Of a stretch of 64,000 nucleotides of DNA, positions 3,007 to 56,300 are shown piece after piece. Made by a program: the position numbers and the translations under genes. The stretch comes from Phallusia mammillata (lineage: Eukaryota). Position 1 is the first letter of the stretch, and the number at the start of each line of letters is the position of its first letter. Below the pieces are notes generated by a model. It ran no database searches, was not told the DNA's origin, and saw only the letters and a program-made list of their open reading frames with translations. The stretch spans positions 21,018,001-21,082,000 of the forward strand of contig OZ281497.1 of assembly GCA_965637545.1 (NCBI GenBank). The letters run 5' to 3'.

Positions 3007-3009
3007 ATT

Positions 3010-12281: not shown

Positions 12282-12445
12282 GACACTGAATGCGACTAGT
12301 ACAGAGTAATACACAATTCAAATATATGTCATTTTTGTTGTAATTGCTCGCAAAGGTCTTAGAAAATTTAGAGCATGCGTAGTTTGTAGGATAGGGAGAA
12401 ACAACCTGACCGACCAAAATACTTCAAACTTGTTGATTTACTGTT

Positions 12446-13148: not shown

Positions 13149-13183
13149 TCGTTTTCAAACTGATCAACGTGTCTTAACCAACA

Positions 13184-19245: not shown

Positions 19246-19371
19246 AAAATTTGGACTGTCATGAACGTTTATTTCGAGCGCGTCGGAGCTTAATGAGGCG
19301 CAAATCTTTTAATTGTTGTAAAAAATTGTAAACGCATTAACTGTAGCGTTTCCCATTTTGGTGGGGGAGGA

Positions 19372-20074
19372 TGTAAGATTTCTTGCCTCTAGCGGCGCAA
19401 ACTGTTATGTACGGGTGCCAGGGAGATCGTCCTGGCATTGCTATTGTCACAACAATGACTTTGTGACGTAAAATCCATTGTGGTGCGAGACCGCATGGTT
19501 ATTAGTTTATTAGTGTCTGTGATGTGCTGAACGCGTGAAAGTGAGTTGTGATAGCTAAGTAACGTATTTCTGATTCTGTTTGAAACAGAAAGTATATTGT
19601 AAATGTGCAAAAGTTGTACCTAAGTGAACTGAACCTGTGAACTTTGCGCTGAGCATTGGATTATTGTGACCCGATTAATTTACTGTGGGCAAGATTCGGC
19701 CTGCATCGATCTGTGCGACGAAGTGACTCGGTTGCATTGCTGTACGCCGGTATGTTTTAATGTAGTGGCCTGTATCTTGGTGTGTTTTTATGTGTTTTAC
19801 TGATTACGACTTACGATATTTACAGTGTGAAAACCGTAATCTGTGATTTCCAACTGGGAAGTCTTATGCCTGGACCGATCAAAGTTTGGTACGTTATTTT
19901 GTTTCTCTCCTGTAAATGCGTTTTGTCGTTGTTCCTCGTTCTGACTTTTACTAGTGTTGTTATGTTTGCAGAAAACCGCGTTTATTGCGCGCGTCATTCA
20001 TCTTGGTCGAAATAAAATTCTGTTGCTCGCACTGGTAGCTTGTCCAGGCGCTGCACTGAAGGTGCGACGCTACA
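19372..20074 (+). repeat. BEL-1 3' LTR
   Basis: Preceded by the PPT, followed by TSD CTGTT. Confidence 0.96.
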
Positions 20075-20247
20075 CTGTTAATGAACCACCAGACGCTAGT
20101 GCAAGGCTTTGAAAGGTTTGACAAACAAAAACACGGACAAATATCATGGTGAAAAACCTAAATTACCAAGATCCATTTTTTAACATGAACAAAGTTTTTG
20201 CTCTATAAAGTCGTACCAATGTTCGGACTTGTGATGAATACATTTAT

Positions 20248-20505
20248 ACTGGGATCAGTCCTGAAGCGTCTATGCAGACCAGTGCGTCGATGCAGAATCA
20301 GGGCATACTTATTGCAATCATAGTACGCCAGGCCTAATAAAGGTGTGATACCGAATCAAGCCGGTCGCGCAGTCATTCAAGGCACAGACTAGAAAAATTG
20401 CCCACCGCAGGCTAGATTTTTTTTAAAGTCTGTGCTATACCATATCGTAATGCTCACGAGACCGGTTCGATTGGATCACACCTTTTAAGGCCTGGCGTAC
20501 TATGA
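20248..20505. repeat. SINE-like repeat with an inverted duplication (fold-back, 20318-20505)
   Basis: Shares ACTGGGATCAG..AAGCGTC, CCCACCGCAGGCTAGATTTT and GGCCTGGCGTACT with 30799-30957; arms TCATAGTACGCCAGGCCT / AGGCCTGGCGTACTATGA, plus further paired blocks inward. Confidence 0.65.
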
Positions 20506-21084
20506 ATCTTCGGATTTGCTTTAATACACTTAAGCGTACATTTGCCGCTTGTCGCACAACAACACCTTTCTCCTAACATACAATCAAACCTCGAGGCAGT
20601 ATGGCAAGGTTCCAAAGGTCATGTGATCCAGGTATATCAGATACGAAATTGTTTTGTTTGCCATTAGTAATAGCGGAAAGCATTACGTTGTTTGCACACT
20701 GCTGGCTAAACGTCGGTATTTTTCCCTGCGATCAGGTGACACCACCCCGTGACCTGGTACGATGTCCTGCATAAAAAGGTCTTCTTCAGAAATGATGGCC
20801 TTCATTGCCGCAACTTATTTGGTATGTCGTTCGTCAACACCAGCCAACAAATCCTATACAAGGGTTTTAAATCTGATTTGTTTGGCTGGGTTTAATGTTG
20901 TTTTCAAATACGGACATTTTAATTGGATTTCTTAAGTAGAGGACACTGAGAGTTTATTGGAAACATATTGTTAAAGCCTTAATTTAGATATAAGTGAATT
21001 AAAATCAATGCAAATTTCACTTGACTGTGAATTAAAACAGTATGTAATTACATAGGATCAAATAATTAAGGCAATAAAATAAAT

Positions 21085-24000: not shown

Positions 24001-26805
24001 AAGTCGGTCACGTGGTCAGTGGTTTTACCGACATCATTCCACCAAACGCTGAAACCTTCCTCGATTACGGCGAATGTACAGAAAACTGCTTAGGATCGGT
24101 AAGCAAAGTTGAACTGCAGCTGTTTGTATATAAAGGTTGGTTAATAGCTAACTTAATGCTAAATCATTTTGTAACGCAGCACATGAAAATGGAAGGCCAG
24201 GACTCTTTGAATGTGTTTGCAGTGTTACTCCACAGTCACTTGCTGGGCAGGGAGCTTACGCTGAAACATGTGAGGTAAAGTCTTTTAGAAAAAAAAGTAT
24301 TTCTAACTGTACTGTAATATGTTGCGGCATAAATACCCCCATCTGTGTAGTCGTTGAACCCATGAGTTTAAATGAATGTGAATTTTGAGTTAAATTAAAA
24401 AAATGTTTTAGAAATGGCACAGAGCTTCCGTACTTGGCCAAAGATTCTTCGTACGACTTCAACTTTCAAGAGACTCGATTTTTATCGGAAGAGCGAGTGC
24501 TTAATCAAGGCGATTCTATGCAGATGATTTGCAACTACAATTCTCTTGACAGATCCACAGTCACATTGGTAATCACATAAAAGTTTTTTTAGGATATTTT
24601 ATCCAAGGACTCTTGGTACAAAGACATGGTACAAAAACCGAATTAGGGTTTTTAAAACAGCAATGAAGTGACCACGAATTTCATTTTTATTTTTGTTGTC
24701 AAGTACACAGTCGATGTAAAAATACACGTGTATAATGAGCTCCCGACTGATTTCGCTACCATGTAAGGTTGAACTAGACGCTTTATCCTTTGACCTAAGG
24801 GTCGGCAACCGTCGGACCGCGGTCCGGTACCGGTCCGCGACGAGTTAGTTACCGGGCGGAATAGTTTTTCAGGTTAATAGCTTTTTTGCCCAAATATCCC
24901 GGGGATGCTAAACTAATTTATGCGTTTTATTGATAAACATTTGAAGTTTTTTTGAGGCCGTACCGCGATAAAATTTTAGTTTCAAAAACAGTCCGTAGTA
25001 CAAAAAAAGGTTGCCGACCCCTGCTTTAACCGATTACACATTTCTTGTTGTTCTCATTTTAGGGTGGTCTATCGACCAGTGAAGAGATGTGTTTATCCTA
25101 TGTGTATTACTATCCCAAAATGTCTTTGGGATTTTGTGAAAGCGAGGCGGATTTATTTCTACTGCTACAGCACTTTGGTATCGCCATGGTGAGGTAAAGT
25201 ATAAACTTTTTACAAAAAAAATGTAAAGTTTGTAGCTGTTGTAAGTCGATTCGGTCTTTTCGGATTCGAGTTTGAGTTTAAAAAACGAGCTTGATCCGAG
25301 CATTACTTTTCATTCGGCATCTTTTTTTCTGCCCTTGTACTAACCTACGGGCCAGATTCGTGTTTTTTAAAGATCAGTGGTTCTGACCTGGTGTCGGGCT
25401 TTAGGTTTGACGCTTGGTGCGGACCCCAATCTCAGGCACTCTTCCAACTCCAGTTTAAAGGAGAAAATTTTACTACAAGCGTATTTATACCATATCTGGA
25501 GGTTTTTATACCATATCTGGAGGCTATAAAAACAACATTTTTTTATTTAAGCTATGTTGGCGAAGCTTTAGTTCCTGGTATGAAGAACTTGAAAATCGAA
25601 TCTCCCCCCGAAATCGCGAATCAAACTGTGTGGGAATATCTCAACACGGTAAAGTATAGTTGTGTAACATGACTGATTGTCTTTTATAAAGATCATTTCA
25701 GAAACCGTTCTGACAACGAGAAAAAATCTTTGGCAAAGCTGATAAAGTAACATTGTACATTTGGCTCGAGGACCAGTCTTACAATTTGGGCACTATACCC
25801 CTGCGGACGCATAAAACACCTTATATTTTTAGCTTAATTGGGATGAAGCATCGGCCGACGATTTTGGAGTAGCAGCTCAACTGATGTTTAGAAGTCAAAA
25901 ATGCTATTCAACCAAATACAGTCCTGTGGAGGTTGGTGATCGATGATTGTTTATCCTTGATATTGTAGGCACGCTTGTTTCACGTCCGTTTATTTCGACA
26001 CACTGAATAGAATGAAGCGAGCACACAATCCAACATCGCAAGTATTGTCGCGAGTCGCGTGTCGCGTGTAATTTAAAGATACGCTACAATATGTTCAATT
26101 TATTAACTACTTGTGTTTGTTATTTTAAACTGATCATTACAGATTTACAGATTTGATCCAGTCTGTGATATATGAATAGATTGTTTTAACGGACTAACGA
26201 TTCAAAATGTTTATCGAAAAGAAAACCTCGATTCCTAAAGAGGACACTGCTGCATGAATAATGTATTACTTTATAAAAACAGCCCTTTCCTAACACTAAA
26301 AACTATTTGTTACGTTCTAGCTTCCAAAGCACTATCTGATTTTACATTTGGACTGGGCTTATAATATGACTCCTTAAAAAATGTGTTTCAAACCGAAGAG
26401 TTTTTTGGTTAAACCTCTTCACATTCTTAGGTTGAACGAAATTGGCCTCCACTGATAATCGATAATCCTTACGTGGAGACCGCAATCAACTGTACTCAAG
26501 CTCCGACCAACGCACCAACTGACCCTCCAACTGATAAACCCACTGACCCTCCAACTGATAAACCAACTGACCCTCCAACTGATAAACCAACTGACCCTCC
26601 AACTGATAAACCAACCGACCCTCAGACTGATAAACCAACTGACCCTCCAACTGACACACCAGACGATGCAACAACTATGAATCCAACATCCATGACTCCG
26701 ATTCAAGAAGAGGAAACAACCAGTGCTGCTGCAAAGTTAAATTTCACTTATTCCTTTGTTATTGTATTAGTAGCAGCGTTCTTGCAAAATATTAACGGTG
26801 TTTAA
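21085..26805 (+). CDS. MOXD1: DBH-like monooxygenase (MOXD1-like) copy C, intact, 15 exons, about 700 aa, long TDKP/TDPP stalk
   Basis: Exons 21085-21243, 21479-21589, 22186-22335, 22424-22517, 22667-22848, 22914-22994, 23215-23313, 23421-23523, 23929-24098, 24180-24274, 24412-24568, 25063-25193, 25552-25648, 25833-25931, 26431-26805; all GT-AG and in frame. Copper ligands VHH, ETHY, HSH, EEMC; hydrophobic C-terminal tail. Confidence 0.93.
23692..23965 (+). repeat. Approximately 119-bp tandem triplication of the intron 8 3' end plus the start of exon 9 in copy C
   Basis: AG|ACAT(T/C)G..ACTCTTCTGGCCT occurs at 23692, 23811 and 23929. Confidence 0.85.
24796..25023. mobile_element. hAT-type MITE
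   Basis: TIR (T)AAGGGTCGGCAACC / GGTTGCCGACCCCTG; flanks CTTTGACC / CTTTAACC; same family as 32822-33042. Confidence 0.85.
26515..26661 (+). repeat. 24-bp coding tandem repeat (TDPPTDKP)n, about 6 units
   Basis: ACTGACCCTCCAACTGATAAACCA units in the last exon of copy C. Confidence 0.95.
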
Positions 26806-29068: not shown

Positions 29069-32000
29069 TTAAATCCCGTTGATATTTTGATAACCGGCAA
29101 ATGCAAACACAATCACAGTGTAATGCATGATATTAAATTTTACAGCAGAGCTGGTCGTTTCTTCAGCCGGGGTGCCAGTGGGACAGTTGTGTGTGGTTTC
29201 CTCGTATGGAAAGTCAATCTTTAACGCAGGCCAGGTTTCCTTAACCTACAAACATACAGAAATGTAAACAAACTAAACTAAACTAAACGATCCAATGATT
29301 AAAATAAATGTATTTTAGACGATATAATCAGTTGACCAGAAAAAACAAAGCATTGCAAACAACGCATGGTATTAAATTGTTTTTTTTTTGTGTGTGTGTT
29401 TGCAGTAAATGAATACTTATAAAGAGTTGTGCAAGTGACAGTGACACTTTTTAAAACAAACCCTTACATTCGGAAGACTACTCTTGGAGGAATAACAATA
29501 TTGAGTTCTCATCATCAACTTGGCTGCTGAACTAAAGTCGTCGGCCGATGTTTTATTCCAATTTAGCTAAAAAACGTATAGTTTAGTTTGTTTGAAACTT
29601 CTTCCCCTATAAAGGTAACATTCATTCATATTAAAAAATTTGATGAATTTTGATTGATCTGCAAAAAAAATACATGCGAACCAAACCTAATGATTGGTTG
29701 CAACTTTGAAGACAACTTACTGAGTTTAGCACTTCCAACACAGTTTGATTGGCGTATTTCATGGGTGCTTCAACCAACAAAGACTGTAACCTGACCTCAC
29801 CTACATTCCTTTAAACACAAAATTAAAAACCAGAAGTGAATGCGATACTTTGAGAACAAGTGCTTTGTGTGTTCAAGCACGGTCCTAAATATTCTTAGCA
29901 AGAAACTACAAGTCAAATAGTTGCATAAAACATTACAACGTTTCAAAGTTTATCACTGTCATCGACAGGTAGAATAGGGATATAACTTGGTTCTGCACAG
30001 CTGAAAACGGGGAGGTGACACAACATTGCAAATAAAAGTAATTAGGGTGGGAAAAACGCATGTAAATTAAAGACTTTGTTTTACCTCACTGAGCCAATTC
30101 CAAAGTACTCCAAAAGTTCAGAAAACATTGGTTCGGTCTTACAGCCTCTCAACGTTATTTTTGGATAGTAGAAGACGTAAGATAAACACATCTCTTCTTT
30201 AGTTGATAGTCCACCCTTAAAACGGAAAACAAGACTGATGTTGTCAACATTACCGTTTTGATTTTATCGTCGGGCAGCATCAAAATAAATAGTTTTTACA
30301 TCATATTACACCGAAAAAATATAGAATAAACTTTTATTTCCGATTTTGTACTGCAATAATATTAACAACTTTATTGTATGAAACCCTTCCCTTCGCACTC
30401 AAAAAGACCTCAAAAAGCTTGTTGGCGACTTACTAGAGTAAAGTCGGATTTTCCAAGAGAGTTGTAATTGCAAATCATCTGCATTGAATCGCCGTGTTTA
30501 ACCTCACGTTCCTCCAACAAAACTCGAGTTTCTTGAAAGTTGAAGTCGTATGAAGAATCCTTGGCTAAGTACGGAAGTTCCGTACCATTCCTGAAAATAT
30601 TTGCTTCAAACTCCTAAAGGCTATAAGTTCGCGGGTTTACTCAAAATGCGCTCTCTTTGTTGTAAGCATAGCGTTTCAAATAAATCACGTAGCTTTTACC
30701 TTTAACCCACAATTGCGCCCCCTACATTTTGCACCTTAACATTTCATAACATTCTAATGTTGAGATGAACATAAGATGAACATATATATAAATTCATAAC
30801 TGGGATCAGCCCTAAAGCGTCCCGGAAAGACTCCTGTCGTGGATTCGAATCCCACCGCAGGCTAGATTTTTCTAGCCTACGCCGTGCCATATGGTGATGA
30901 ATGCTTGGTGACCGGCTGATTCGGTATGACGCCTTTAATGGGCCTGGCGTACTGTGATTTACATTCTAATGTAGCACATTTTTTTATTATTGTCAACGAA
31001 AAAGGTTTTAAAAATGTCTAATAAAGTTTACAATTATAGAAGTATTTAGGCCTATACACAAAACACCACAATGACAACTATAGGCTAGACTAATTACATA
31101 GGTCCAGAAATAATTACCTCACATGTCTCAGGGTAAGTTTCCTGCCTAACAGGTGACTGTGCAGAAATACTGCAAATACATTTATAGATGATTGTCCTTC
31201 CGCCTCCATACGCTGCGTATAAGTAAGATTTTATTGACACATTAGCCTTCTCACGACCAACGACAATATAATTTTGCGTACTGATCCTAGACAGTTTTCC
31301 GTGCACTCGCCGTAAGCGGAAAAGGACTCAACATTAGGTGGAATGAGATGAGTTATTCCTGAAAGGTGGTGTCCAACTGGAAGTATGCCGGAATCGTGCT
31401 CGCGCAGGTCGGGCGTGTAATAAAAGCGGAATCCGGAAGAGTCAACGATGTCTAGTATGATAAGCGTAAGTTCAAGCATGGGGGAAGTAATCAACACTAT
31501 AAACCAGAGTTGTAAACGGGCTTGAAATTGGAGTCTGAACCCGGCCTAAACCCGAAACAACAAGCCCAAACCCGGCCCGAAAGCCCGACCCGACTTATAA
31601 CTCTGCTATAAACTGCTTGTTCAGTGTACACAAGCCTACGTCAAACTTCAAGATTATAAACTTCAGTTACTACTTTTAAGTTGTGTGTAAAGCTTTTAAG
31701 GATGGGGTACTAAACGGCTTTTCACCACACACTAGCCTGGTTTGAATTCAGGATTGTCATAATGAGTTTCCAATACGACATATTTTGGTGCATCTGGAGT
31801 TCCCAACGGATAGCCAGCATGTTTAGGAAAGTGAAAGGCCTGAAGCAAAAAAAATGAGCGCAAACACATTAATTAAATTTCAGCCAATCGGTAAAAAACT
31901 GTAAACAAGTAAGTGAGTGCATATCAAAGAAATGCTTCAACTTACCCCTCCTCCTATAGCCCAGGCATAAATAACAGTCTGACAATTGTGGAAATCTTCT

Positions 32001-34068
32001 GGCATATTGTTTGTAAAACATTTGACGCTTTCATCAACATGGGTCTAAAATAGTTAAAACCATGTCAGTGTCCTTCAGTTTTTCTAAGTGCGCTACATTT
32101 GTAATGTTTCGCTGTGAATATTCCATTAATGCAGTAGTTTTCAAACTGTGCGTCGCGACGCCCTGGTGCGTCGTTTCAACTTTCCAAGGGCGTCGCAAAA
32201 TGTTTCCGTTTTGTGGCTTTTTGTTGTTGTATCAATAAACCTAACTTTAATAATAATTTTCCTCATTAACTTTTATATGCTGGTGGGTCGCAAGTTCAGA
32301 AAACTTTTCCAGGAGCGTCGCAACAAAAAAAAAGTTTGAAAATCACTACATTAATGGCATACAATGTTTGTGAAAGTTAAGAAAACCACACAAAAAAAAC
32401 AATAGACTACTTTATTTGCGTCGTCGGTGCAATGGTAAACCAGCATGTGATGGACATTGAGTTCGTGTCCTTTCTGGATTATGGGCTCTACCTATACCAA
32501 CAATAAACACATAAAATTATATTTTAGCTTAGAAATAATAAAAAAAGTTTGCCAACCTTGACCAAGTGATGTTTTTGTGGCATGTCTGGTATCTTCAGTA
32601 AATGGCAATTGTAATAGGTGTCCACAGCTGGAACATGAAAGTTGTCAGTGACAAGGTCAAATGACAAATAGTTTTTTTCCTCCGGCAACATGCTTTCCTC
32701 ACTTCCAGGTGAGTTAAGCAACAGCATGCTCTTGACACCTAAAATGTGACGGACAGTAATTTATTTGAGTAAAACACAAACTTACAAGCTGTTTTAACTG
32801 TGGTAAGCGACGAATTTAACACAGTGGTCGGCAACCGCCGGTCCGCGGCCCGGTACCGGTCCGCGGGGAGTTCGTTACCGGGCCGTATAATTTTTCAGGT
32901 TAAATGCCATGAACATTTTGCCCATGTATTCCGGGGATGATAAACCAATTTAAGCGTTTTTATTGCTAAATATTTGTAGTTTTTTATGACCGGTCCGCGG
33001 TAAAATTTTACTTTTAAAAGCGGTCCGCGGTACAAAAAAGGTATCAAACAAAACGATGCAGAAGCCTATCAAATGAAATTTCCAAATACACACTGCCACT
33101 GTGTTTAAGAAAAGTCTATGTAATATGACAGGCAGAAACTAATTATCAAAGCTCCTGATTGTCTTACCTCTATTCGCAGCTCCGTGTTGATCGTCAAAAT
33201 GTAGATCATCTTCAGTAGGATCATTTACTCCCCAGGCGTATATCATTCTTATCGTGTCGGTCTAGAATTCACCCACAAAGTTACGCAACGACTATTTATT
33301 TTATCAACTTCTTTAACTTTAATAATCAACAATATAAAGATATCTAAACAGTAAACTTGCACAGCCAAGATTACAAGACACAAGTGCAAACCGTTATATC
33401 AACATCTTCACTGTCACAGGTGACAAGCAGACGTCGAAACTTGATCAGAGTGTAACCATCGACTTCCATTCCCTCCAACAACTCAACATTCTTAACTGTG
33501 TCCTGAGATGGGTAACCGTTGGTTTGCCCGCCATGGCGATCCTGAAAAATAATTGGTTTATAAGAAGACAGTAAAGCATAGGCATTGAGATGCAATAGTA
33601 GAAATTGTACATGTTCCTAAATACAATATGTCTGCTTACCGTAATAGTCACTCCGTTTTTCACCCATCCGACTATAATGTCAGCATTGGCCATGCTTCCT
33701 GTCGGTGAAAAACCGATTCCTACCCATCCCTCGGTGTGTCCGTGTATCTAAAATAGGCGTAGCATATTACTGAATCATAGCAGAACAGAACATACGTTGC
33801 AGGTAACAAAATCTATTGTTTTGCTGAACTTGGTATGAGTATCAATTATTGTCACCTGCAGTTATATACAATAGAGTACAAAATATGTTAAAAATCCAAA
33901 TCCACTCACCTCAAAAGTAATGGTTGTATCGGTAAAACTCCAATATAATTTCATAACTTCGCCTTCGTCGAGAACCACGTCATGAGTAAAAGTCTCTGTC
34001 GTATTAGGTTGGCATTGTGCCAAGGTGATCAACCACAAAATAGCGAAAAGTTGCCACCAATACCACAT
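29069..34068 (-). CDS. MOXD1: DBH-like monooxygenase (MOXD1-like) copy D, intact, 15 exons, about 630 aa, shortest stalk; intron 8 has a GC donor
   Basis: Exons 34068-33910, 33747-33640, 33541-33392, 33261-33168, 32738-32557, 32491-32411, 32044-31946, 31839-31737, 31451-31282, 31212-31118, 30590-30434, 30215-30085, 29808-29721, 29566-29468, 29245-29069; ligands VHH, ETHY, HSH, KEEMC. Confidence 0.9.
30799..30957 (+). repeat. tRNA-derived SINE-like fragment
   Basis: B-box-like GGATTCGAATCCC at 30841-30853, followed by a tail shared with 20401-20505. Confidence 0.55.
31505..31605. mobile_element. 101-bp hAT-type MITE
   Basis: TIR CAGAGTTGTAA / TTATAACTCTG; perfect 8-bp TSD CTATAAAC. Confidence 0.85.
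32132..32348. mobile_element. hAT-type MITE
   Basis: Imperfect TIR CAGTAGTTTTCAAACT / AGTTTGAAAATCACTA; perfect 8-bp TSD CATTAATG. Confidence 0.85.
32822..33042. mobile_element. hAT-type MITE, right TIR lost
   Basis: Colinear with 24796-25023 (CAGTGGTCGGCAACC..GGTACCGGTCCGCG..TACAAAAAAGGT). Confidence 0.75.
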
Positions 34069-34793
34069 ATTTTAATAGTATCACAAGTCTAGAAAAAGAA
34101 CAATATTAAAAACCCTTTTTTTACAAAAGTTATTCAGGTGCTTTTGTTAAAAATTGCTAATTAACTTGGCCTCGAACATTTTAAATTAAACTGTAACCAT
34201 TTTAGAAAGATCCAAAAACGCTTCCAAACTGTGTTTTTCTTTCCAGCAATGGAAGTAAACTTCTTGTTCACTTCCATTGACCTCGAAAACCGCAGCAATG
34301 ATCTCGAAAAACCGCTGCGTAAGGGCCTTTATGTAAGTTACGAGTTGTCATAGGAATTCAACAAATCGCAAGGACAAAGAAAACGTTTTTGGTTTTGAAT
34401 CTGGACATATAAACTTTGACAAGCTATAACTTTCTGTATAATATGTTAACCCAGGATAAACAGTTTCAATGGGGTGATAAATTTAACAGTTTAAGGACCG
34501 GATCTTTAAAACGCGCTTAACCTGCCGTTGACATTTCAAAACAATTGTAAAATATTTCATAGCTTCGTTGCACTGTCTGCACCATACATAGCTTTGTTCA
34601 GTTTTAACAGATTAAGTACACGGAGCCTACAAGTGTTTATTTTTCATAATTGTATACAGCCCGCTTTCCGCGTTTTATAGCATTATTGTAGTTTATTAAT
34701 GCTTTTTTATTTAACTATATGCAATCAGCTGTACCCCGCAAGGTTGTGCGGTTCATTAATAAACTGTTATATTTGCGACTTTTAGAAGTTTAC

Positions 34794-37700
34794 TTAAACA
34801 CCTTTAACGTTTAGAAAGACGGCCAATACGATCACAATTACAAAGGAACGCATGAAATTAAACGTAGCAGCAGAGCTAGTTGTTTCCTCTTGATTTTGGA
34901 TAAACGTATCTATAGTTGTTACAGGGTCGAGGACGGAGTTTTCGGCAATATCGTCGGCGACGGTTTCTGTTGGGGGTACAGTGGGTGCTTGAGAACAGTT
35001 TGGTGAAGGCTCCTCGTATGGATGGTCGATTGTCAATGCAGGCCAAGTTCCTTCAACCTGAAGATGCAACGAGATTTAAACACAAAATAGATTTCAATGG
35101 TAGTTTAAAGCAGATTAAAATTGCTTTTGTCGGAATTTATTACTTATTAAGACAATTGAAAGAAAAACAAATAAATATGCCATTTTTTGAATCATAAACC
35201 ATTTATTGGGTTTATCACTGACATCTGGGGGACTGCCACCGAAGGAATGGCAAATTTGTGTTCTCGTCATTGATTCGGCAGCTGAACTAAAGTCATCGGC
35301 CAATGTTTCATTCCAATTTATCTAAAATATAATGTGCAATTTTTTGATAAGTAGACCACAAAACAAAATACAGCAAACTACGGATAATCCGGAGCTCAGT
35401 CAAATTCGCAAAAAATGTACAAATAATTTTAATGCGGAAAAATGTAAGTAATCAATATCGGTTAATCCGGACAATTATTTGTTCAGAAAGGGTCCGGATT
35501 AAGCGTAGTTATTTGTTCAGAAAGGGTCCGGATTAAGCGTACCGTATAGTACCCTGGATTGTAAAATTGCCTTTAAAGTGCCACTTTGGTGATTAGTTGA
35601 CTAAAAAAAATTAAGAAAAAGTTTCGTTGGATAAGCAATTAAAAAAATAAGATGAAAAGTCTGCAAGCTATATTACCAAACATTTTTCGCATCAAACGCA
35701 AAACCAGACAGTGACTTGCATGTTTGAATATGACTTACCGAGTTGAGAACTTCGAATACAGTTTGATTTGTGTATTCGGAGGGGGTTACAACAATCAAGT
35801 TTTTTATTCCGTCAAGAGGGCTTCCACCTCCATTCCTTTAAACAAATAGTGCTTACATTACCGTGTCATCAGGGGTTAATGGGCATAATGCTAGAAAACA
35901 TCCATGCATTTTACCTCACCGTCTCGATTCCGAAGTATTGTAAAAGTTCACTAAGAAGAGCTTCGGTTTCGCAAACTACCAACGGTATTTTGGGATAGTA
36001 ATATACGTAGGATAGACACATTTCATTGCTGGTCGAGAGACCACCCTTTAATGCAATAAAAAAATGCAATACGTGGGAAAAAATGATAAACATAGGTTCG
36101 AAATTGGGTTACAAACTATTCAATTAGCGATAATAAACAGCTACATCAAGTAAAACACAGGCAACACATTTAATTGGGATTTATCAGTTGTGTTCAGTCC
36201 TTATTTTGTAATAACACTATATATATTATATCAGTAGCTTTAGGTGATATTGGCGACTTACAAGAGTGACATTCGACTTGCCAACAGAACTATAATTGCA
36301 CACTGTCTGCATTGAATCGCCCTGCTTCAGCACACGTTCCTCCGACAAAAATCGAGTCTCTTGAAAGTTAAAGTCGTATGAAGCATCCTTGGCCAAGTGT
36401 GGAAGTTCCGTGCCATTCCTAAAACATTTGCACATGAATATATGGCTCGTAGAACATAAGGTGTTTAAACTAGAGAGCAATAATACAAACAAAAGATATT
36501 GGTAAGAATTTTTGCAAAACAGAAAAGTCATAAATACGTTTTACCAACTAAAAATGTCCGATATAATCCTGGTTACCTCACATGCTTCAACGTGAGTTCC
36601 CTGCCCAGCAAGTGACTGTGCAAAATGACTGCAAACACATTCAGAGAGTCCTGACCTTCCGCTTCCATGTGCTGCGTTACAGTTGATTCAATATTTTGTA
36701 TTCCTATATCCCACTTAGGTTACATACAACATAAGATTATTTCACTTACCGATCCAAAACAGTTTTCTGTACATTCGCCGAAATCGAGAAAGCTTTCAGC
36801 GTTTGGTGGAATGATGTCAGTAAAACCGCTCACCGAGTGTCCGACCTTCAATATTCCGGTATCGTGCGTGCGCAAGTCAGGAGTGTAATAAAAGCGCAGA
36901 CCCGAAGAGTCGACGATGTCTAGTACAATAAGGTTAAGTTGTTCAAAAACGTTGACACCTGCTATCCAACTAGGTCAGGTTTATCTGCACAATAATCGCT
37001 GCTGTGTATTTTCTAAGTTCAACCAACCAAGCTGACAAAAACTTAATGTTTGGTTTCCATGCACGCAAGCTTTTAATTTACTCAAATTTCTGTTAAAGTG
37101 CCTTGGTTGGACATTGATACATAGATAACGTGCGCAGAGATTTATAAAAGTGATAGTGTAAAATATTGTACAATAATAACCTGATTTGAGTTCTGGATTG
37201 TCATAATGAGTTTCCACGACAACATACTTTGGTGCGCCTGAGGTTCCTAACGCATAACCAGCGTGCTTGGGAAAGTGAAATGACTGACGTATAAAAACAC
37301 ATTTAAAGCTTTAGTGGAAATTGAAAACCAAGAAAACCAGACAATTTTTTAGTGTACGTTCAAACTGAATTTCGAAACAATTACAAATTTGCAAACAGGT
37401 ACGAAAAATACAAGCACGGCATTTTCGTTTTAACCTACCCCCCCTCCGATTGCCCAGGCAACGATAGGAAACGCACAATGGTAGAAGTCTTCCGGCATAT
37501 TGCTGCTGTAACATCTCGCACTTACATTAACAAGGGTCTAGAAAAAATTATAACTTCACCAACGTTTTAGGAGTTGTTAAATTTCCTATTGCAATAAAAA
37601 CGAGGTTTTTGACCGGAGGTATGGGATACTAGACTGGTTGTAAAAATAAATCCCGTTTAGACGTTATTGAAAGAAAAAGCACAGGATTTACAGTGGTTCG

Positions 37701-39736
37701 GAATATTTCTCACAAAAAAACGTTTCCAGTAATCGTAAACGAGGGGGCAAGAAAAAATTGAACGAAAGCGTAGCTGCAAGCAAAAAACACCACTAATGTA
37801 AAGAGAAAAATCGACTTCAACTTACTTGATTTGAGTCATCAGGGCAATGGTAAACCAGTATGTGATGAACATTGAGTTCGTTTCCATTTTGAATAAGGGG
37901 CTCCACCTTTAAAAGTAACAAATTGATGCAATTAAAGTAATGTTTGCCTTTAACAGGTTAACCTTGACTAAATGGTGTTTTTGTGACATGTCAGGAATCT
38001 TCAACAAACGACAGCTGTAGTAAGTGTCCTCAGCTGGAACATGAAAGTTGTCGTTGGCAAGATCAAATTGTAAATGAGTTTCTCCCGCTGGGAACCTGGT
38101 TTGGTCACTTCCTGCTTGATTAAGCATGAACATGCTTTTAACACCTAAACAGATTTTTCAATTCAATATAAGAATCCAAAAGTATCTTGACTAAAACGGT
38201 AAATTTTAAAATGTGTGAGTATTTGCTGGTTTTGCGACCTCTGTTCGTAGCTTCATGTTGGTCTCCGAAACCTAGATCATCTCCAGTCGGATCATCTACT
38301 CCCCAGGCATATATCAATTTCATTGTGTCAGCCTAGAATTAACCCATACCGTTAAATAAAACGGAAGATAATAAGCCATAAGTGCATACCGTTATATGGA
38401 TGTCTTTACTGTCACAGGTGGCGAGCAAACGTCGAAACTTGATCACAGTGTAACCATCGACCTCCATTCCCTCCAACAACTCAACATTCTGAACTGTGTC
38501 CTTGGATGGGTAACCGTTGAAACTCCCGCCGTGACGATCCTGAAATAATTAGTTTATAATGCAGACATTAGAAGGTAAAACAGCCACCATTGCTTTTGAT
38601 GCAAGGCGATTGGAGATAAAGAAAAGTGTTCGCTTACCGTAAGTTTTGCCACTCCGTTTTTTACCCACCCAACTATAATATCGGCATTGGCCATGCTTCC
38701 AGTCGGTGAAAAACCGATGCCAACCCATCCCTGCGTGTGTCCGTGTATCTGAAATGCAATATGATGGGTATTGTAGCACGCGTTAGTTAGGCCATAAAGC
38801 TGTTTCGAAATGTACGGAGCTTTAGTTTACTTTAAAGTTTAAAGTATACGGCTTGCAACCCTGACCGAACCACATGCATTATTGCCAGGGCCAAACCAGA
38901 TAAAATGTAACTGATTGTCCCAGCAAAACCTACTTTTGGCAGACAAAAGCTTGTGTTTTGCCACAAAAGGCCCCTAGAACCAGTGTTTCATACCGGAACG
39001 GAACGAAACCAAATAACGTTATTCGTTCTGAGCAAATTATTTATTTCGTTATTTCGTTCTGGACCGATATTTTCATTTCGTTCCGGTCTGACCGACATAA
39101 ATTTATAACGGTATTTTTCGGTATTTCGGTCTAACATTAGAACATTTCGTTGTGGTCGTTACAACTATTAAGCGAAAAACGAAAGAAAGTTGCAACACAC
39201 AACAATTATTGTCGGTAGTTGTTACGTCACATAACATTTCTCAATAATGGTCAAACGGATGTAAATTGTAGGAGCCTCAATTTTTATTATATCCTAACGG
39301 CGCGAAATTTTCAGAATTTTTTTCATGTCAAATGTCCAGAACGAAATACCGGAATAAAATAAAACGGTATTTCGTTCCGTTCCGGTATTTTGAATATTTT
39401 TTATTTCGGTATTTCGTTCCGGTATTTGAGCCAAAAATTATTTATTTCGTTCCGGTATAACGTTCCGTTCCGTTCCGGTATGAAACACTGCCTAGAACAA
39501 TGAACAGTTGATGGTTCGCACCAGTTAAAAAATTCTGGACCAAAAATTGAAATAATTTAAAAACCATTCCAACATACCTCAAACGTGATGGAAGTGTCGT
39601 TGAAATTCCAATAAACTGTTATAACTTGTCCAATATCGAGAACCGCACTGTGGGCAAACGACTCTGTAGTGTTTGGTTGGCACTGAGCTAAACTAACCAA
39701 ACACAAAACATAGAGAAGTTGCAGCCAATGCAACAT
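34794..39736 (-). CDS. MOXD1: DBH-like monooxygenase (MOXD1-like) copy E, intact, 15 exons, about 663 aa
   Basis: Exons 39736-39578, 38748-38638, 38539-38390, 38332-38239, 38144-37963, 37906-37826, 37537-37439, 37283-37181, 36919-36750, 36671-36577, 36418-36262, 36045-35915, 35835-35739, 35321-35223, 35057-34794; ligands VHH, ETHY, HSH, SNEMC. Confidence 0.93.
35371..35544. mobile_element. Possible pogo/Tc1-type MITE
   Basis: TA-flanked CAGCAAACTACGGATAATCCGG with a degenerate inverted counterpart CCGGATTAAGCGTA; a 34-bp tandem duplication at the right end. Confidence 0.4.
38981..39490. mobile_element. hAT-type MITE, 510 bp, in intron 1 of copy E
   Basis: 25-bp perfect TIR CAGTGTTTCATACCGGAACGGAACG; perfect TSD CCTAGAAC; subterminal TATTTCGTTCCGG-type repeats. 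Confidence 0.93.
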
Positions 39737-41151
39737 ATTGCAGTAGTCACCTCATTTGACGAAGATAAAATCGAAAGGAAATCGGTAACATTGGCCTAGC
39801 ACAACATACTGCATCATACACATAAGAATGCTCGGTTGCAACATCTCCTCATTTAAAATCAGAAAGTAACTGTGAAAAACAAAAATACAGGTTTGTTACG
39901 TAATAATGATTTTGTTTAAACAATGTTTCCACTGAATTGTATGTAAAATTGGTGGCAGTCACGATGGCCCATATGGCCCATATGGGCTTTCGCGGTCCCC
40001 AATCAATTGTTTTCCTGTTTTTTTTACTATAGAGTGCACTAAACCAAACTACTGCAGGATTTTCAACGTCTAGCGACCCACTTAAACGGTGTCACTAAAT
40101 CAGTGATTCTCAAACTGTGTGCCGTGAGAGATTTCCAAGTGTGCCGTGAAATTTTCCTATTTTAAAGTGCAATCATTTCCTGGTGATTAAGGACTTCATG
40201 ACAAAATAATGGTGTGCATGACAATCTTTCAAACCTCATGGTTTTGCTCATGGGCGCCGGCACGTAGGGGCAAGAGGGGGCGGCACTCCTCCCCCCACCC
40301 TGTCTGTGCGGGGATTTTTTTAAGTCTACTGCATATATTTTATGCCATGTGTTACTTGAAATAGTAATCTATCCCTGCAAGAGTGTTTTTGTCAAAGTAA
40401 AAACATTGGAAAAATCAAAGTAGCACTATTCTTGTTGCACAAGACACCTGGGAGCGGTAAAGAGTCGTATTCGTGTTCAAACATTCCCTTTTTTTAATCG
40501 TGAAAATGTCACAAAGACACAGTGGAAACAGATGCAATGAAACGTATGAAAAGATTAGAAAGTATTGGTTGAGAATAAAGAAAGTAGTCAATAAAGTACA
40601 ATGCCCTTCGCCTAATTATTCTTTAGTATCAGACCGTCTGAACCTAGGCTTTGCATCCTCATTGCATCTTAGCGGCTTTTACCAAAAGAAAGGGTGTTGC
40701 ACAAATACAAAAGTACATATCGATTGAACAGTTAATATCGAGCCGAAACATCAATAGGTCACAAGTTGGTCTATATTAACCGAAGAGGTTGAACCTGCGA
40801 CGAGGTACTGACGTACTTGCACATCGATTTTGCTGTTGGAAAGTCCGCTGATGAAAATGATATTGTTATTATAGAACAGGGTTTTATCCTATTTCACTGC
40901 TAAATATGTGTATACAGTGCTAAAAATGTCTGATATCTGCTGGTATTTTTGTCGAATTTTCGGTATCTGACGCCGATCGCATTGGGAGGGATGTGCTGAA
41001 GAGAGAAAAGAAAAAACGAACGCCAAATTTGACGAAAAACGCGCTGATAAAATATAAGTTGAGAGAGCGACGTTGCATTTAGACACACACCAACAAAGCG
41101 GTTTATAAGTCACATCTTAAATTGTTAAAAGGTAATAAATATTTCGCAAGA

Positions 41152-41783
41152 ATGGATATTGTTGCTTTTAGACGCGGACCAGTTCTGCTGTTTTTTATGA
41201 CAGCTGTAGTCTGTGTTTGCACCACATGTGAAGCAGCGGCCATAACAGCCAACGACGAGGATAGTTTTCAAGTGCAAGATTTGGACGTTAACATTGAAAG
41301 GTAAAAAGGATTGGTCACTTAATCTGCATTTATCGATATTGTGTAAATTAAATGTTTTTGTGACATACAAGGCAAACTGAGTATCAGGTCAAAAACGACT
41401 TTATGCAAATTGGCATAAAAACTGAAGTCGTGTGATAATAACTTATGCTTTGTAATTTGCTGATGATTTGTTAAAAAACTTAATTATAAAAGTGTGCACT
41501 AGTGTACTTATTTTCGTAACTAAATGTTGCCCTTTATTTTAGATTCCGACGGAGTCTTTACATGGTGGAGCGACGTCGTTGCGGATTTCGGCTGAAAAAG
41601 CATTGCTACATTCTCGCGTATCGATGCCACGCTTCTGTGCTGTCAAAACGAAGTGTGGACAACGATATGGAAGAATCATCACAATCAGATTCAATTCTCG
41701 AACGTGGAATCAGATCCATTGTGACAAAACGAAGACGTCGATTTCGGGCAAACTGTTCGATTTGTAGCGCAAGATGTTGGTAG
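41152..41783 (+). CDS. Secreted prepropeptide (129 aa) with furin/dibasic sites and two 3-Cys peptides; family not recognised
   Basis: Exons 41152-41300 (AG|GTAAAA) and 41543-41783 (TTTTAG|A) join in frame: MDIVAFRRGPVLLFFMTAVVCVCTTCEAAAITANDEDSFQVQDLDVNIERFRRSLYMVERRRCGFRLKKHCYILAYRCHASVLSKRSVDNDMEESSQSDSILERGIRSIVTKRRRRFRANCSICSARCW*. The phase-2 junction itself creates the RFRR site. Confidence 0.8.
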
Positions 41784-50335: not shown

Positions 50336-53300
50336 TCATTTCAACGTATGGCTCCAATTAATCGGATTGTATTTGAGTTGTTCCGAGTCTCGTTTATTTT
50401 CCATCTGTTTTTGATGCCTTCGTTCTTTCCAACGCGATTCCATCATCTAACAATAAACGCAGTCAAAACATAAATATAAATGAAAGTATTTTGCTAACAA
50501 TTGTTGACTTGTAATTTTCTGGTAAATTAGTCAGTCAATGACGAACTTGCGGTACAGGGAAGAGTATTCGGCAGAATGTGAAAGGTTCTGACAGTTAATA
50601 AGAAAACAGGGAAAGGGAAAGAAATGCCTTTTAAGTATACTTCCGCTTTTGCTTTAAACTGTTGTATTTTATCCTGGTTTGTGAACACACCAAAATATAC
50701 ACCATGTGGTGACCGCGAAAGCAGTCGCGATTATCTTTTTTATTGCGATAACAACTCTTTGAGTACGTTTTAACGACAGTTGTTCCTAAAAAGTAAACTT
50801 GTATAAAATAACAATCCAATTCCAAAAACCAAACTCAGGGGGATAGAACACGACCACAGGGCACAAAGCGTACCACACACAAGCAGTAAAGTAAGATTTG
50901 AAAGAGTTCTTTTGTAAGGACAATAAATAAACATCCTGTTAAAACTTTACTTGCCGACTTTCGTCATTGCCAATCCACCATTACCTCTTTATTTGCTTTC
51001 GTAAAGGTCACAAGAAAGTTGAAACGGTTTTGTCGCTTTTCGGCGTCTTCCAGACAATCGCGTCGGTCCTTTTCTGACGTCATAATGCTCTCACTTACGG
51101 CTTCTTGCCACTGGTAATTTCGCATTCGCTGTCGATCTTCCATCTGCGTTTTGAGCGTTGAACGAATATTTGACCTTCAAATACATAAAATGTCACCACC
51201 GACCATAAAAGTGAGGTTGACTTATATGGACGAAAACTACCACAACATTCCACAAAGTTCAACGTAGTAATGAAACTGTACTAGAGCTTTTTTACCATTG
51301 GCCGCGGTAAAACTAAGCAGGTTAAAATAAAGAACATTTTGACAAAATCAAATTGTCAAATTTCACATCTTACTTCTGCACGAAATGTTTGAAATAATAT
51401 TAAACAAAAATTAATATGGACAAAAAGTAATGGTTTGGTCGTTTCATTGTACCTGTAACGTTTTCTGTCGCGTGTTCCCCTGTTTTCACGAAAACGTCAC
51501 ACAATGTGGCTCAATAAAAAACGCGGACACCATAAAGGAACGACAATTCGTTTTAATGGTATGGTCAATTCCGGTTTTTCTGCGAATGAAAACGAAAACG
51601 TATAAAGCACAAATCGCACTCGAAACACAACAAGTAAACATACCGACTGTTTGGCCACAGGGGTTTTGGTATTTAATGATGTTTTAAAGGCCGAACAAAT
51701 CCTGCACAAATAACCAAACATTTACAGTTTTAGAACAAAACTTCACATTACAGTACAAAGCCAAACTTACCAGCAAAATGATTCACAAATGCAGCTTTAT
51801 CAACTCAGCAATTTATTTATACTTTCTAGCTGCTAAATAAAGGTATCAAAGTTTAGATTGATGGCTTCAATTCAAATTATGCCTGTCAGCAGTTTACAAA
51901 CGTACACCACGAGGCAAGTTACAAATGATTGCAACATACACAGTACACAGGCAATTGACGTCACGCATTAGAACATTAATTGTCACGCAATGGAACACTA
52001 ACTGTTGCGTCACAGGACAATTGTTATACGTTTTGCTGGGCAAAGTTATGTTCACAACAGTTGGCGAAAACGACGTAACATACCCCCACCCGAATGTATC
52101 TCCAGGGGAGCATACATTCTAAAACACAAAACGTCGTTGAATATACACCGAACAAAACGAACGAAAATGAACATCGCAAACAGTTTACAATTTGCCGGTC
52201 GCGCAATCACCGCGGGAGTCCATCACTAAACACAGTTTGGTGATGGGTCGTCTGACGGAGGTGGCACCGGTTCCTACCAGTGCAGAGCGCACGACACCAT
52301 GCGCATCCGGAAAGGTCGAAATCACTCGGCCGATTCTCCAACGTGCTCGCGGAATGGATTCGTCCACAACCAACACTAGGTCGCCTGCCTCGACGTTCCT
52401 CTGCTTCGAAAACCACTTCTGTCGTTCAATGACAGTGGGTAAGTATTCTCGCACCCAGCGACGCCAAAATTGGTCAGCCAGGTATTGCACTTGTCGCCAA
52501 TGGTGGCGAACGTAACAGTCCTTCTTCACGAACACGCCAGGTGGCATGTTGGGCGACGGACGCAACAAAATTAAATGATTGGGAGTCAGCGGCTCGTCCG
52601 ATTGTGGATCCATCACCACTGGAACAATGGGTCTACTGTTGAGAATGGACTCCGCTTCAACAAGCACCGTTTCAAGGGTGTCGCGGGTCACGCTTTGTGC
52701 CGTCAGCAACGCAGAAAGAACTCTTCTTACAGACCTGATCATTCTTTCCCAGACGCCACCCATATGGCTTGCCGCAGGAGGATTAAAAGACCATTGGATG
52801 TCCTGTTGTCTCAAGAAGTCATCAATGCTCTGTTGATTCCATCTTCCGATAGCCTCTTTTAGCTCACGCACGGCTCCGACAAAATTTGTTCCATTGTCGC
52901 TGCAAATCTTAGTTGGTCTGCCACGTCGTCCGATGAATCTTCGCAGGCAGTTGATAAAAGCACTCGTTGACAAACTGTCAGCTACCTCCAGATGCACTGC
53001 CCTGACCGTCATGCAGGTAAATAGACAGCCGTACACCTTCACTTGGCTTCTTGCTTGGCGCACCATTAGCGGTCCAAAATAATCAACGCCAACGTACGTG
53101 AACGCGGGGCTATGGGAGTTCACACGATCAATCGGCAATCTGGCCATAAGTTGCTCGCCAACGGGCGCATTTCGTTTCCTGCAAAACACACAATTGCCCA
53201 ACACACGGCGTACAGCGGCTCCGCCCTTTATAATCCAAAATTTTTGACGGATTTCAGACCAGGTGTGACTCATTCCTGAGTGACCTACGTCCTTATGAAA

Positions 53301-56300
53301 CTTGACAATCAGTAAGTCGGTGAGGTGATGTCTGCCTGGAAGTATAATAGGATGCTTCGCATCATCCGAAATAGAGGCCAATTCAAGTCTCCCTCCAACG
53401 CGTAGGAGACCGTTGCGTAGGGTGGGGCCAAGCTTGTCAAACGTTCGAGAGTTCTTCGTTTTCTTCCACTGACCATTGCCTTTTCGCAGATTTTCAAGCA
53501 CCTCTGGAAAGGCTTGTTGTTGCACAATTCGAAACAGTGCCAATTCAGCTTCTTGAAGCTCTTGAACCTGAAGGGTTCCCTTCGGAATGGTCGTATTTGT
53601 ATCTGCACACCGTTTCGACAATAAAACGCGCTTATACCGTAACAACCAAGCGGTTGCACGTCGTAGGCGATTCCAATCGGAGTAATGATTGATCAGTTTT
53701 GAGATAGAATCCGTCTCGCAAGCGGTTCCACACGTAAAATTTGCACTGACCTTCTTTGCTTCCATTAAAATATCATCTCTATTTGAAACTTCTTCTTCTT
53801 TAGGCCAAGTAGATTCGTCACCCCAAAGAAACCGTGGACCGGTTAGCCAAACGTTGTTATTCACCATTTTCTTCACAGACAAGCCACGTGAGGCGTCGTC
53901 GGCAGGGTTTAATTTGGATGGAACATGTCGCCACTGCTCACTTCTGCTTCCACTGTCAATCTTTGCCAGTCGGTTTGCTACAAAGGTTTCGAAACGTTTT
54001 GTAGAATTCCTAATGCTCATCAACACCGACATGGAATCTGTCCAGAACGTCGATTCGCAGTCGGGACAGCCCAACTCTCGTCGCAGAAAGCCATCCATTT
54101 TAACCGCTAGCACCGCTGCCGTCAACTCCAAGCGTGGTATGGATACCGTATGTATCGGTGCAAGTCGTGACTTGCCAAGCAAAAAACAACAGTGCACCTG
54201 CGTATTGTGGTTAACAAGGCGCAGATAAGAAACTGCCCCGTAGGCCGAAGACGATGCGTCAGCAAAATGGTGCATTTCCATCTTAACTATCTTTCCAAAG
54301 GAAGGAGGTTTAATGCAGCGTTGAACCCGTACTTGGCTTAACATAGGAAGTCCCTCCATCCAGCTTCTCCAACGATTAGCATCTTCATTTGAAATATCTT
54401 CGTCCCATCCTAACCCTTGACGACAAAGGTCCTGCAAAAGTATTTTGGCACTTACTGTAACAGGAGCAACAAGACCTAAGGGGTCGTACAGCGCACTGAC
54501 GGCAGACAAAATTCCACGGCGCGTCAGCGACTTATTCGGCATCTGCACATCAAATCCAAATTCGTCATTTGGGACGTTCCAAAACACGCCCAAAATTCTT
54601 CCAGCTACGTCCGAATTAAGATCATGATTCTTCGCCATCTTGGACCGTTCGTCAGAAGGAATTGATTGTAAAACTCTATTACTGTTGCTCATCCACTTGG
54701 TTAGGTGGAAGCCACCTCTTTGCAGGAGCTGACCTAAGTCTTTCACCAACATAATTGCTTCGTCCTCGGTCGCCACGCTTGCAAGGCAATCGTCCACGTA
54801 GAAATTTGATTTTAGCGCTGTAGTAGCTGCAGCACTGAACTCGTGGCCAAACTCTTCCGCAGTTTGGAGCAAGCTGAAAGCGGCGCAGCTCGGAGAGGAT
54901 GTTGCGCCAAAAAGATGTACAGTCATCTCGTGGTCTTCCGCTGGCTTGGACAGATCGCCCTTGGGCCACCACAAGAAACGAAGGCTCGCAGTGTCTTCTG
55001 GCCTTACCCGGATTTGATGAAACATGGATTCAATGTCTGACACAACCGCCACGGGTTCCTTTCTGAACCTTGTCAGGACGCCTACTAAGTTGTTCATCAG
55101 ATCTGGGCCACTCATTAGGGCATCGTTTAATGCAACGCCTGCGTGCTTTGCGGCACAATCGAACACGACGCGCACCTTGTCAGGCTTGCGCGGGTGCAAA
55201 ACAGGGTGATGTGGAAGATACCACTCTCGTTTACTTTGGCCGCGATCGTGCGAAGAGATCCTTTTCGCGTATCCCTTTTGGATATAGGTTTCCACAGTGC
55301 CAACGTATCGCTCACGAAGTTTCTCGTCCTTCTTTAGTCTTCGTTCGAGAGAACGGAGTCTTCTTTCTGCCAACACGCGGTTTGGCGGAAGTTGAGTTTG
55401 ATTTCCTTTCCACAGCAAGGGCAACTGATAATGGCCGTCTACATGCAACACGTCCCGTTTCATAATTTCGAGCGCCGATCGGTCTTCACGCGAAATTCTC
55501 TTGTCATCAATTATGGTTAAATCAGAAAAATCGGTTCTCCACAGACAGTCGATCTCTTTGCTCACGTTGTCGTCAAAACTACTTACGTAGTTTAAATCAA
55601 TGCGTGTTCCGCTGGTGGGCACAAACGATGGCCCCAACAAAGACCACCCAAGAGCCGTTTTTACTGCAATGGGTTGTTCGCGGCTGCCGCAGCGCGTCTC
55701 CTGGAAAACCATCAGTTCAGGAGCATCGACGCCAATCATAAGTGTCACTTCTCCACCTTCGATCTGTGGAAACTCTAAACCGCGCAAGTATGACATCCTT
55801 TTCAGTTTAGTCTTTGATGGTAACTTGTTAGTTTTTACCGGAAGCTTATCGATGGCCATTACACTGTTAAGATTAATACTAGGTCCATCATCGAAGGCAG
55901 GAGCAACAGACAGGGAAACTATTTTTGTTGGCATAGTTTGCTCGTGGCCTACAGTTCGAAGCGATACAGTACGAGACTCCCCTTGCAAGTGTAGGGCATC
56001 CACTAGCCGTTGACTACACATAGATTTAGTGGCACCAGAGTCCAAAAATGCATAAGTGAGAAATTCTATGTTGCCATTTCGCGCCCGAACTGGTACGATA
56101 TTCATGTACATATCACCACATATACTGGTATTGCCACATATTGCAGAGGGCTTGGAATCTGACGCCAAGTGAAATGAATTAACTTCACTGGTTACCTTTT
56201 CTTCAGGAGCAGAACTGCGGTTGGCTTCTGCTCTAGAAACCTCCCGATGTAGCAGCGTATGATGAGAGTTGGAATCACAACCGGAGATCTTGCACGGATC

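Follow-up and report, generated by a model that had tools for sequence, protein, structure and literature searches.

An apparently unannotated two-exon gene for a precursor predicted to yield two three-cysteine peptide chains

The stretch of DNA analysed here (contig OZ281497.1, positions 21,018,001 to 21,082,000 of the forward strand; 64,000 nucleotides, numbered from its first letter and called the window) contains a small gene at 41152-41783, on the plus strand, whose predicted product resembles a prohormone. From its sequence and that of an orthologue, the gene is judged to be a real, single-copy, two-exon protein-coding gene, apparently so far unannotated, that encodes a pre-propeptide of about 129 residues. 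The comparison argues strongly that the precursor is probably processed into a disulfide-linked two-chain peptide, and it may represent a new peptide of hormone-like or defence type. The reading preferred here, with a probability of about one half, is that this unannotated gene specifies a convertase-processed, disulfide-linked two-chain signalling ligand (hormone- or cytokine-like) rather than a membrane-active antimicrobial.

The coordinates that an earlier note on this DNA had given for the feature matched the window base for base, and all of the elements that it listed were found there. Translation from the ATG at 41152, which stands in a favourable context (A at -3 and G at +4), gave a first coding exon (41152-41300) of 49 codons and two further bases, which begin an Arg codon. 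The donor, AG/GTAAAA, lies at 41300/41301, and the unspliced frame meets a TAA directly after it. The intron (41301-41542; 242 nt, phase 2, GT..AG) was delimited by its splice signals and ends at the acceptor, CCTTTATTTTAG followed by A, at 41542/41543; the Arg codon that it divides (AG+A) specifies the first residue of the motif RFRR. The second coding exon (41543-41783), also defined by translation, includes the stop codon TAG at 41781-41783. The guanine-plus-cytosine (GC) content is 0.44-0.46 in the exons and 0.29 in the intron, a contrast that fits a real gene. The two exons lie in different frames and appear in a six-frame listing as separate open reading frames (ORFs), which bears out the earlier observation that the N-terminal exon is missed by a six-frame scan. 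A TATA-like box (TATAAGT, 41053-41059), read directly from the sequence about 95 nt 5' of the ATG, is a putative core promoter. The window as a whole is AT-rich eukaryotic DNA, with a GC content of about 0.38 outside two GC-richer blocks and an N count of zero; ORFs of about 80 codons are numerous in it, and such an ORF is unremarkable by itself.

The predicted precursor opens with a signal peptide of about 28 residues (41152-41235), with a predicted cut after CEA or AAA (+/-2 residues). The signal-peptide call was heuristic, being based on n-region charge, a Kyte-Doolittle core and the (-3,-1) rule; in the window, the n-region is basic (RR) and precedes a hydrophobic core whose Kyte-Doolittle values average 2.96 across 12 residues. 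Three further cysteines within this signal peptide are not conserved in the orthologue. An unconserved N-terminal pro-segment of 21 residues with a net charge of -6 (41236-41298) leads to the first basic site, the furin-type R-x-R-R motif R-F-R-R, which comprises the split Arg codon (41299-41300 plus 41543) and 41544-41552. Peptide 1 (41553-41645) is 31 residues long, has a net charge of +6 and the cysteine pattern C-x7-C-x6-C, and is nearly invariant over its C-terminal half. Its N-terminus is uncertain because a dibasic pair (RR or RK) stands immediately N-terminal to its first cysteine. The second basic site is a K-R of the prohormone-convertase dibasic type (41646-41651; invariant residues K35 and R36, followed by an invariant S-V), which is not a furin site because there is no Arg at P4. 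The linker that follows (41652-41729; 26 residues, net charge -3) is acidic and not conserved in sequence. The third basic site, R-R-R-R-F-R (41730-41747), might be cut after the fourth Arg (as R-x-R-R) or after the sixth residue (as R-x-x-R). Peptide 2 (41748-41780; x-N-C-x2-C-x2-R-C-W) consists of the C-terminal 11 residues, or of 13 if the cut falls after RRRR; its cysteines are spaced C-x2-C-x3-C and are followed by Trp and the stop codon, leaving a free C-terminus that lacks an amidation Gly.

An orthologue was identified when 1.84 billion representative proteins were searched by HMMER with the exon-2 peptide as query; of the two matches, one is a true relative. This protein (P0002; 162 residues, E 3.5e-12) aligned through its C-terminus to query residues 7-79, and a pairwise BLASTP comparison between the window exon-2 product and the relative gave 9e-19. 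P0002 stems from Logan, where it is an isolated entry of run DRR090687 on a contig of 1869 nt (L001). The ORF recorded for it (L001 970-1458) was miscalled, running across the intron and a TGA that was apparently read as Trp, and half of it is intron; this miscalled ORF is the sole database trace of the peptide family.

The gene on L001 could be reconstructed directly from the contig. A TATA box (TATATAA, L001:693) lies 130 nt 5' of the ATG at L001:823, which opens a first exon of 40 codons encoding a signal peptide. The intron (273 nt; donor AG/GTAGGT at 944/945, acceptor TTTTCAG at 1217) has the same phase as that in the window and splits the same AGA Arg codon, which lends indirect support to the splicing predicted for the window gene. 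The second exon encodes, in order, IRR, a 28-residue peptide with a charge of +6, KR, a 29-residue acidic linker, RRRRVR, an 11-residue peptide and a stop codon. The first site thus reads R-I-R-R in the orthologue and the third RRRR-V-R, the latter followed directly by Pro. The L001 linker holds an additional K-R, peptide 2 ends in Cys-Trp-stop, and an AATAAA is found about 325 nt further 3'.

The earlier note had proposed a search for conserved cysteine spacing in relatives. In this relative, the six cysteines, their spacings (C-x7-C-x6-C and C-x2-C-x3-C), the RxRR, KR and RRRRxR sites and the terminal Cys-Trp-stop were all identical to those of the window gene. Invariant positions in the exon-2 alignment (A1) include C13, C21, C28, C71, C74, C78, K35-R36 and R63-R66, and the invariant stretches are the Arg pair of site 1, K-R-S-V, R-R-R-R-x-R, L-A-Y-R-C-H-A-S-V-L and N-C-x2-C-x2-R-C-W. 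The parts between have changed: the linkers differ in length (26 residues in the window vs 29 in L001), the pro-segments have diverged, and the signal-peptide exons are 20% identical, with physical properties that are alike. The exon-1 peptides of both orthologues have n, h and c regions, the n-region being basic and the hydrophobic core spanning 12 residues or more, with (-3,-1) sites, and the signal peptide that had been claimed for the precursor was present in both by the heuristic test. The basic sites RFRR, KR and RRRRFR were likewise where they had been described, with matching sites in the orthologue; the sequences previously quoted for the cationic peptide 1 and the 11-residue peptide 2, with three cysteines each, are exact; and the linker is indeed acidic in both species (net -3 in the window, -5 in the orthologue). 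The acidic pro-segment holds for the window (-6) and fails as a shared trait, since the pro-segment of the orthologue is not acidic. Outside the gene product, promoter footprinting between the window and L001 revealed no common motif besides the TATA boxes, and L001 retains none of the window's antisense or other-frame ORFs.

Substitutions between the window and L001 were counted by the Nei-Gojobori method, as proportions of non-synonymous (pN) and synonymous (pS) differences. For peptide 1 and its sites pN was 0.27 and pS 0.94 (saturated), and for site 3 with peptide 2 the values were 0.21 and 0.57; for the linker they were 0.63 and 0.58. Alignment at the DNA level was restricted to the two peptide-coding stretches, and neither introns nor flanks align. 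These values indicate purifying selection on both peptide regions but none on the spacer. The strength of the orthologue match and the common position and phase of the intron place the gene beyond chance. Constrained peptides and cleavage motifs around a free spacer are the pattern of a processed peptide precursor, by which a chance ORF, a pseudogene and a repeat are excluded. Features of a convertase-processed precursor were found in both genes: a signal peptide, and conserved basic motifs that bracket conserved peptides while the spacers are unconserved.

Known families were sought with the spliced model, exon by exon. Pfam scans of both exons and both orthologues returned nothing relevant, and PDB sequence and profile searches (E up to 10) yielded nothing beyond a borderline match to the immunoglobulin (Ig) domain of CD79B. 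A word-index protein search, for which window exon 2, residues 83-162 of P0002 and alignment A1 served in turn as queries, brought up no relative other than P0002, and an exact look-up of the 73-residue genomic ORF returned no record. A metagenome scan with the alignment and with a degenerate pattern for the most conserved stretch gave no match, and the same pattern gave 0 matches in prokaryotic genome and viral collections, as expected. No literature was found on the conserved motif, a literature keyword search for novel mosquito cysteine peptides gave nothing matching, and scanning the window for Rfam families and tRNAs gave no match. That no annotated relatives were found is informative only so far as the collections cover the relevant insects. 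The description of the precursor as being of an unrecognised type was upheld to the extent that no known family was matched in Pfam, in the PDB sequences or in the two protein collections. Two of the outcomes that the earlier note had named as refuting its reading, a lack of conserved cysteines and cleavage sites in relatives and a clear match to a known family, thus failed to appear in the relative and the collections examined, and the reading is supported to the extent that sequence allows.

Two matches were rejected. The top match of the HMMER search (P0001; 1045 residues) consists of a 67-residue tandem repeat and was dismissed as a relative; 15 weak matches, all to the unconserved linker, add up to its score, and no cysteine is aligned. 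The match to the CD79B ectodomain Ig profile (E 0.0013) was judged to be due to chance: the middle of the alignment is the unconserved linker, and the protein ends one residue past its last cysteine, without a Trp at the core position. The features of an Ig domain (a beta-sandwich of about 100 residues, the B- and F-strand cysteine pair, the core Trp and the G strand) are not found in the exon-2 product.

A processing pathway can be proposed from these features. The signal peptide would direct the precursor into the endoplasmic reticulum and be removed there, and the six conserved cysteines would form three disulfides in the uncut precursor. R-x-R-R and R-R-R-R are canonical furin-type motifs, and KR without Arg at P4 is of the regulated-secretory type cut by prohormone convertase (PC) 1/3 or PC2-like enzymes. 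Peptide 1 would accordingly be freed at its N-terminus by furin-type convertases acting on RxRR and at its C-terminus by a PC2-type (PC1/3 or PC2-like) convertase acting on KR, and a furin-type cut at RRRR(xR) would free peptide 2; a carboxypeptidase would then trim the basic tails, and the acidic spacer would be discarded. Because each chain has an odd number of cysteines (three) and all six are conserved, at least one disulfide would have to be interchain. The predicted product is a covalent two-chain peptide, in which about 28-31 cationic, probably helical residues would be joined to 11-13 C-terminal residues ending in Cys-Trp. Cutting at RRRR alone would already yield two chains, even in cells without a PC2-type enzyme. 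Pro directly after the cleavage residue should hinder cutting at that bond; the Pro that follows RRRRVR in the orthologue therefore favours a start of peptide 2 after RRRR, and a cut at site 3 after the fourth Arg appears at least as likely as one after RRRRxR.

A helix was predicted, at low confidence, over the cysteine region of peptide 1 in an AlphaFold2 model built from the two-sequence alignment. In helical-wheel geometry, the cysteines of peptide 1 (offsets 0, 8 and 15) lie within 80 degrees of one another, as do those of peptide 2 (offsets 0, 3 and 7). If helical, each chain could therefore display its cysteines on one face.

The role of the product is the weakest step of the argument, and a signalling role is only modestly preferred to an antimicrobial one. 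It is favoured by the single copy in 64 kb, by the invariant non-cysteine residues, by the lack of amphipathicity, by the lack of a near kappa-B-like site and by a KR site of neuroendocrine type. Several observations weigh against a signalling ligand, or against the gene itself. The arguments for signalling are indirect throughout, and the family rests on two sequences, the window gene and L001. The spliced product and the genomic ORF are unrecorded in protein collections, which may reflect species coverage only. The canonical AATAAA is absent within 800 nt of the window stop codon, where only the variants GATAAA and CATAAA were found. The AlphaFold2 model (predicted local distance difference test score 45.8, predicted template modelling score 0.29) is too poor to give a fold or a disulfide map. 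Finally, precursors of host-defence peptides classically combine a high positive charge with an acidic spacer, as seen here.

That last point leads to the alternative in which the acidic spacer masks a cationic, cysteine-stabilised peptide until furin cleavage releases it to attack microbial membranes. Such a precursor would account for a charge of +6 on peptide 1 and for the acidity of the linker (-3 and -5) in both species; two of the three sites are of furin type, which suits the constitutive pathway of fat body or epithelia if the usual enzyme preferences apply, and no hormone family was matched in the Pfam scans. The likeness to furin-processed cationic defence precursors of the insect defensin type extends to the signal peptide, the RxRR cut, the cationic cysteine-containing product and the charge-offsetting acidic segment. 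However, those precursors give single chains with an even number of cysteines, unlike the two conserved odd-cysteine peptides set here about a conserved pair of cleavage sites, and no defensin-type Pfam model was matched. Nor does peptide 1 have marked amphipathicity: its helical hydrophobic moment was reached by 696 of 2000 and by 255 of 2000 shuffled sequences and is not significant. Non-cysteine residues are strongly conserved despite saturated synonymous sites, which is unusual for immune effectors, and the locus is unique within the 64-kb window, where no paralogue was found. There is no kappa-B-like site within 822 nt 5' of the ATG; the nearest is at 40310, and with three such sites found and 4.3 expected it lies within the chance count, without enrichment. 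That the N-terminal pro-segment of the orthologue is not acidic also counts against this reading. A host-defence role is therefore considered unlikely.

It is also conceivable, at a still lower probability, that the mature product is a single-chain or partly processed secreted protein of about 76 residues, forming one small domain with three disulfides, in which the internal sites stay uncut or only RxRR is cut. Cleavage is predicted from sequence motifs, and a KR without Arg at P4 would stay uncut in cells that lack a PC2-type convertase. The Pro after RRRRVR in the orthologue, given the convertase preference noted above, should hinder the cut at that bond, and the weak profile match covers the entire exon-2 product rather than one peptide. 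Against this, RRRR is itself a canonical furin site, N-terminal to the Pro. The linker, moreover, is unconstrained (as its pN and pS values show) and variable in length, yet it is bracketed by the invariant KR and RRRR, and is for that reason better explained as an excised spacer than as the core of a domain. A comparable single chain is trissin, an insect neuropeptide of fewer than 30 residues with six cysteines, whose pattern opens with the C-x2-C-x3-C spacing seen in peptide 2. In the window gene, by contrast, the cysteines are parted 3+3 by a spacer of 26-29 residues with conserved cleavage sites; trissin was not returned by any of the searches.

The precursor was also compared with those of the insulin/relaxin superfamily, whose logic the earlier note had invoked. 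In insulin, two cysteines about 11-12 residues apart lie in the B chain and four in the A chain (CC-x3-C-x8-C), and the B-chain helix packs on two A-chain helices. As in insulin and relaxin precursors, the order after the signal peptide is a first, longer chain that carries cysteines and a predicted helix, a dibasic site, a spacer presumably excised between basic sites, and a short C-terminal chain behind a second basic site; there are six cysteines in all, and disulfides presumably precede cleavage, so that the chains would stay linked. The first cysteine is followed by G-x-x-L, a possible likeness to insulin B chains that is only a lead. In contrast to that superfamily, the cysteines are split 3+3 (C-x7-C-x6-C; C-x2-C-x3-C) and not 2+4, there is no CC doublet, and there is an additional N-terminal pro-segment, predicted to be cut off at RxRR. 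The second chain, at 11-13 residues, is too short for an A chain and would be unable to hold two helices. Neither orthologue matched Pfam Insulin (PF00049) with E values allowed up to 10, and the PDB sequence and profile searches at the same limit returned no chain of insulin or relaxin. The chain-linker-chain layout was thus retained, including in the orthologue, and membership of the insulin/relaxin family was not.

A related alternative is a very divergent member of that superfamily that homology searches have missed, for example a gonadulin (Dilp8-like), the insulin-like peptide that varies most among arthropods. Gonadulins are so variable as to be hard to find (PMC7357564). The window gene is like those of gonadulin and Drosophila ilp 8 in being small, fast-diverging and prone to escape homology-based annotation, and in its two-chain precursor logic. 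Gonadulins, however, keep six cysteines at the insulin positions (PMC7357564), which the window peptide does not. Gonadulin is tied to the presence of LGR3, and in Aedes aegypti gonadulin is listed as 'Not found' and LGR3 as 'Absent' (Veenstra 2020, PMC7357564), which bears on the window gene only if its source is a mosquito of that kind. A hidden insulin/relaxin relative is accordingly regarded as improbable, and the predicted precursor is better described as founding a new family that shares insulin-like processing logic and is not a member of the insulin family.

A non-functional sequence (a chance pair of ORFs, a pseudogene or part of a repeat) is now all but refuted. In its favour, the gene has no canonical poly(A) signal close by, and the databases contain no annotated protein for it. 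Against it, the orthologue has the same exon structure, intact frames and peptides under purifying selection, the locus is unique in the window, and a repeat would have given many database matches instead of one.

At a distance of 1.4 kb from the peptide gene, and in divergent orientation to it, is the first exon of a gene with DOMON and copper type II monooxygenase domains (dopamine-beta-hydroxylase-like, DBH-like). Four paralogous DBH-like (MOXD1-like) genes, recognised by their DOMON, Cu2_monooxygen and Cu2_monoox_C exons, stand in tandem, some of them inverted, at about 1-7127 (minus strand), 9832-26800 (plus), 31234-35075 (minus) and 36229-39740 (minus). They fill most of 1-39740, and each opens with a similar signal-peptide exon (for example from 39735 and from 7100 downward). 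Of the last exons of two of these paralogues, at 26431-26802 (plus) and 34797-35075 (minus), one carries a Pro/Thr/Asp-rich tandem repeat (PTDPPTDK-like) and the other a non-repetitive Pro/Thr-rich counterpart, which suggests a variable mucin-like tail. An intron of the DBH-like gene nearest to the peptide gene contains, at 39000-39480, many short inverted and direct repeats of the type 'ggaacgaaat / cggtatttcg'; this region resembles a small non-autonomous element, with palindromic ends like those of a miniature inverted-repeat transposable element at about 38985-39000 and 39470-39490.

Two complete BEL/Pao long terminal repeat (LTR) retrotransposons flank the region of the peptide gene in opposite orientations. 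The first (12446-20074, plus strand) appears to be nested in the plus-strand DBH-like gene. Its 703-nt LTRs (12446-13148 and 19372-20074) show 100% identity and have TG..CA ends; a target-site duplication of 5 bp (CTGTT) is present, and between the LTRs lies an unbroken ORF of 1938 residues (13429-19245) with DUF1759, RVT_1, Peptidase_A17, Integrase_H2C2 and DUF5641 domains; the identity of the LTRs suggests a recent insertion. The second (51454-58567, minus strand) has identical 627-nt LTRs (51454-52080 and 57941-58567), the target-site duplication GTACC and an unbroken ORF of 1908 residues (52185-57911) with the same five Pfam domains. Together with the short, AT-rich introns and the type of promoter, these surroundings were read as suggesting that the DNA is from an insect, quite possibly a culicine mosquito.

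The peptide gene itself is a concrete example of a short, intron-split peptide gene missed by gene predictors and homology searches. It is tentatively suggested, as a possibility held with less confidence than the signalling role itself, that it is the founding member of an unrecognised insect (probably dipteran) family of two-chain hormones, with proinsulin-like processing, a distinct 3+3 cysteine framework and fold, and an orphan or as yet unrecognised receptor. Should the DNA come from a mosquito or another dipteran, the gene would extend a set of insect peptides commonly regarded as nearly complete, and a conserved two-chain peptide would point to a receptor-ligand pair not yet sought. Even if the product were a defence peptide, a covalent heterodimer with three cysteines per chain would be an unusual design.

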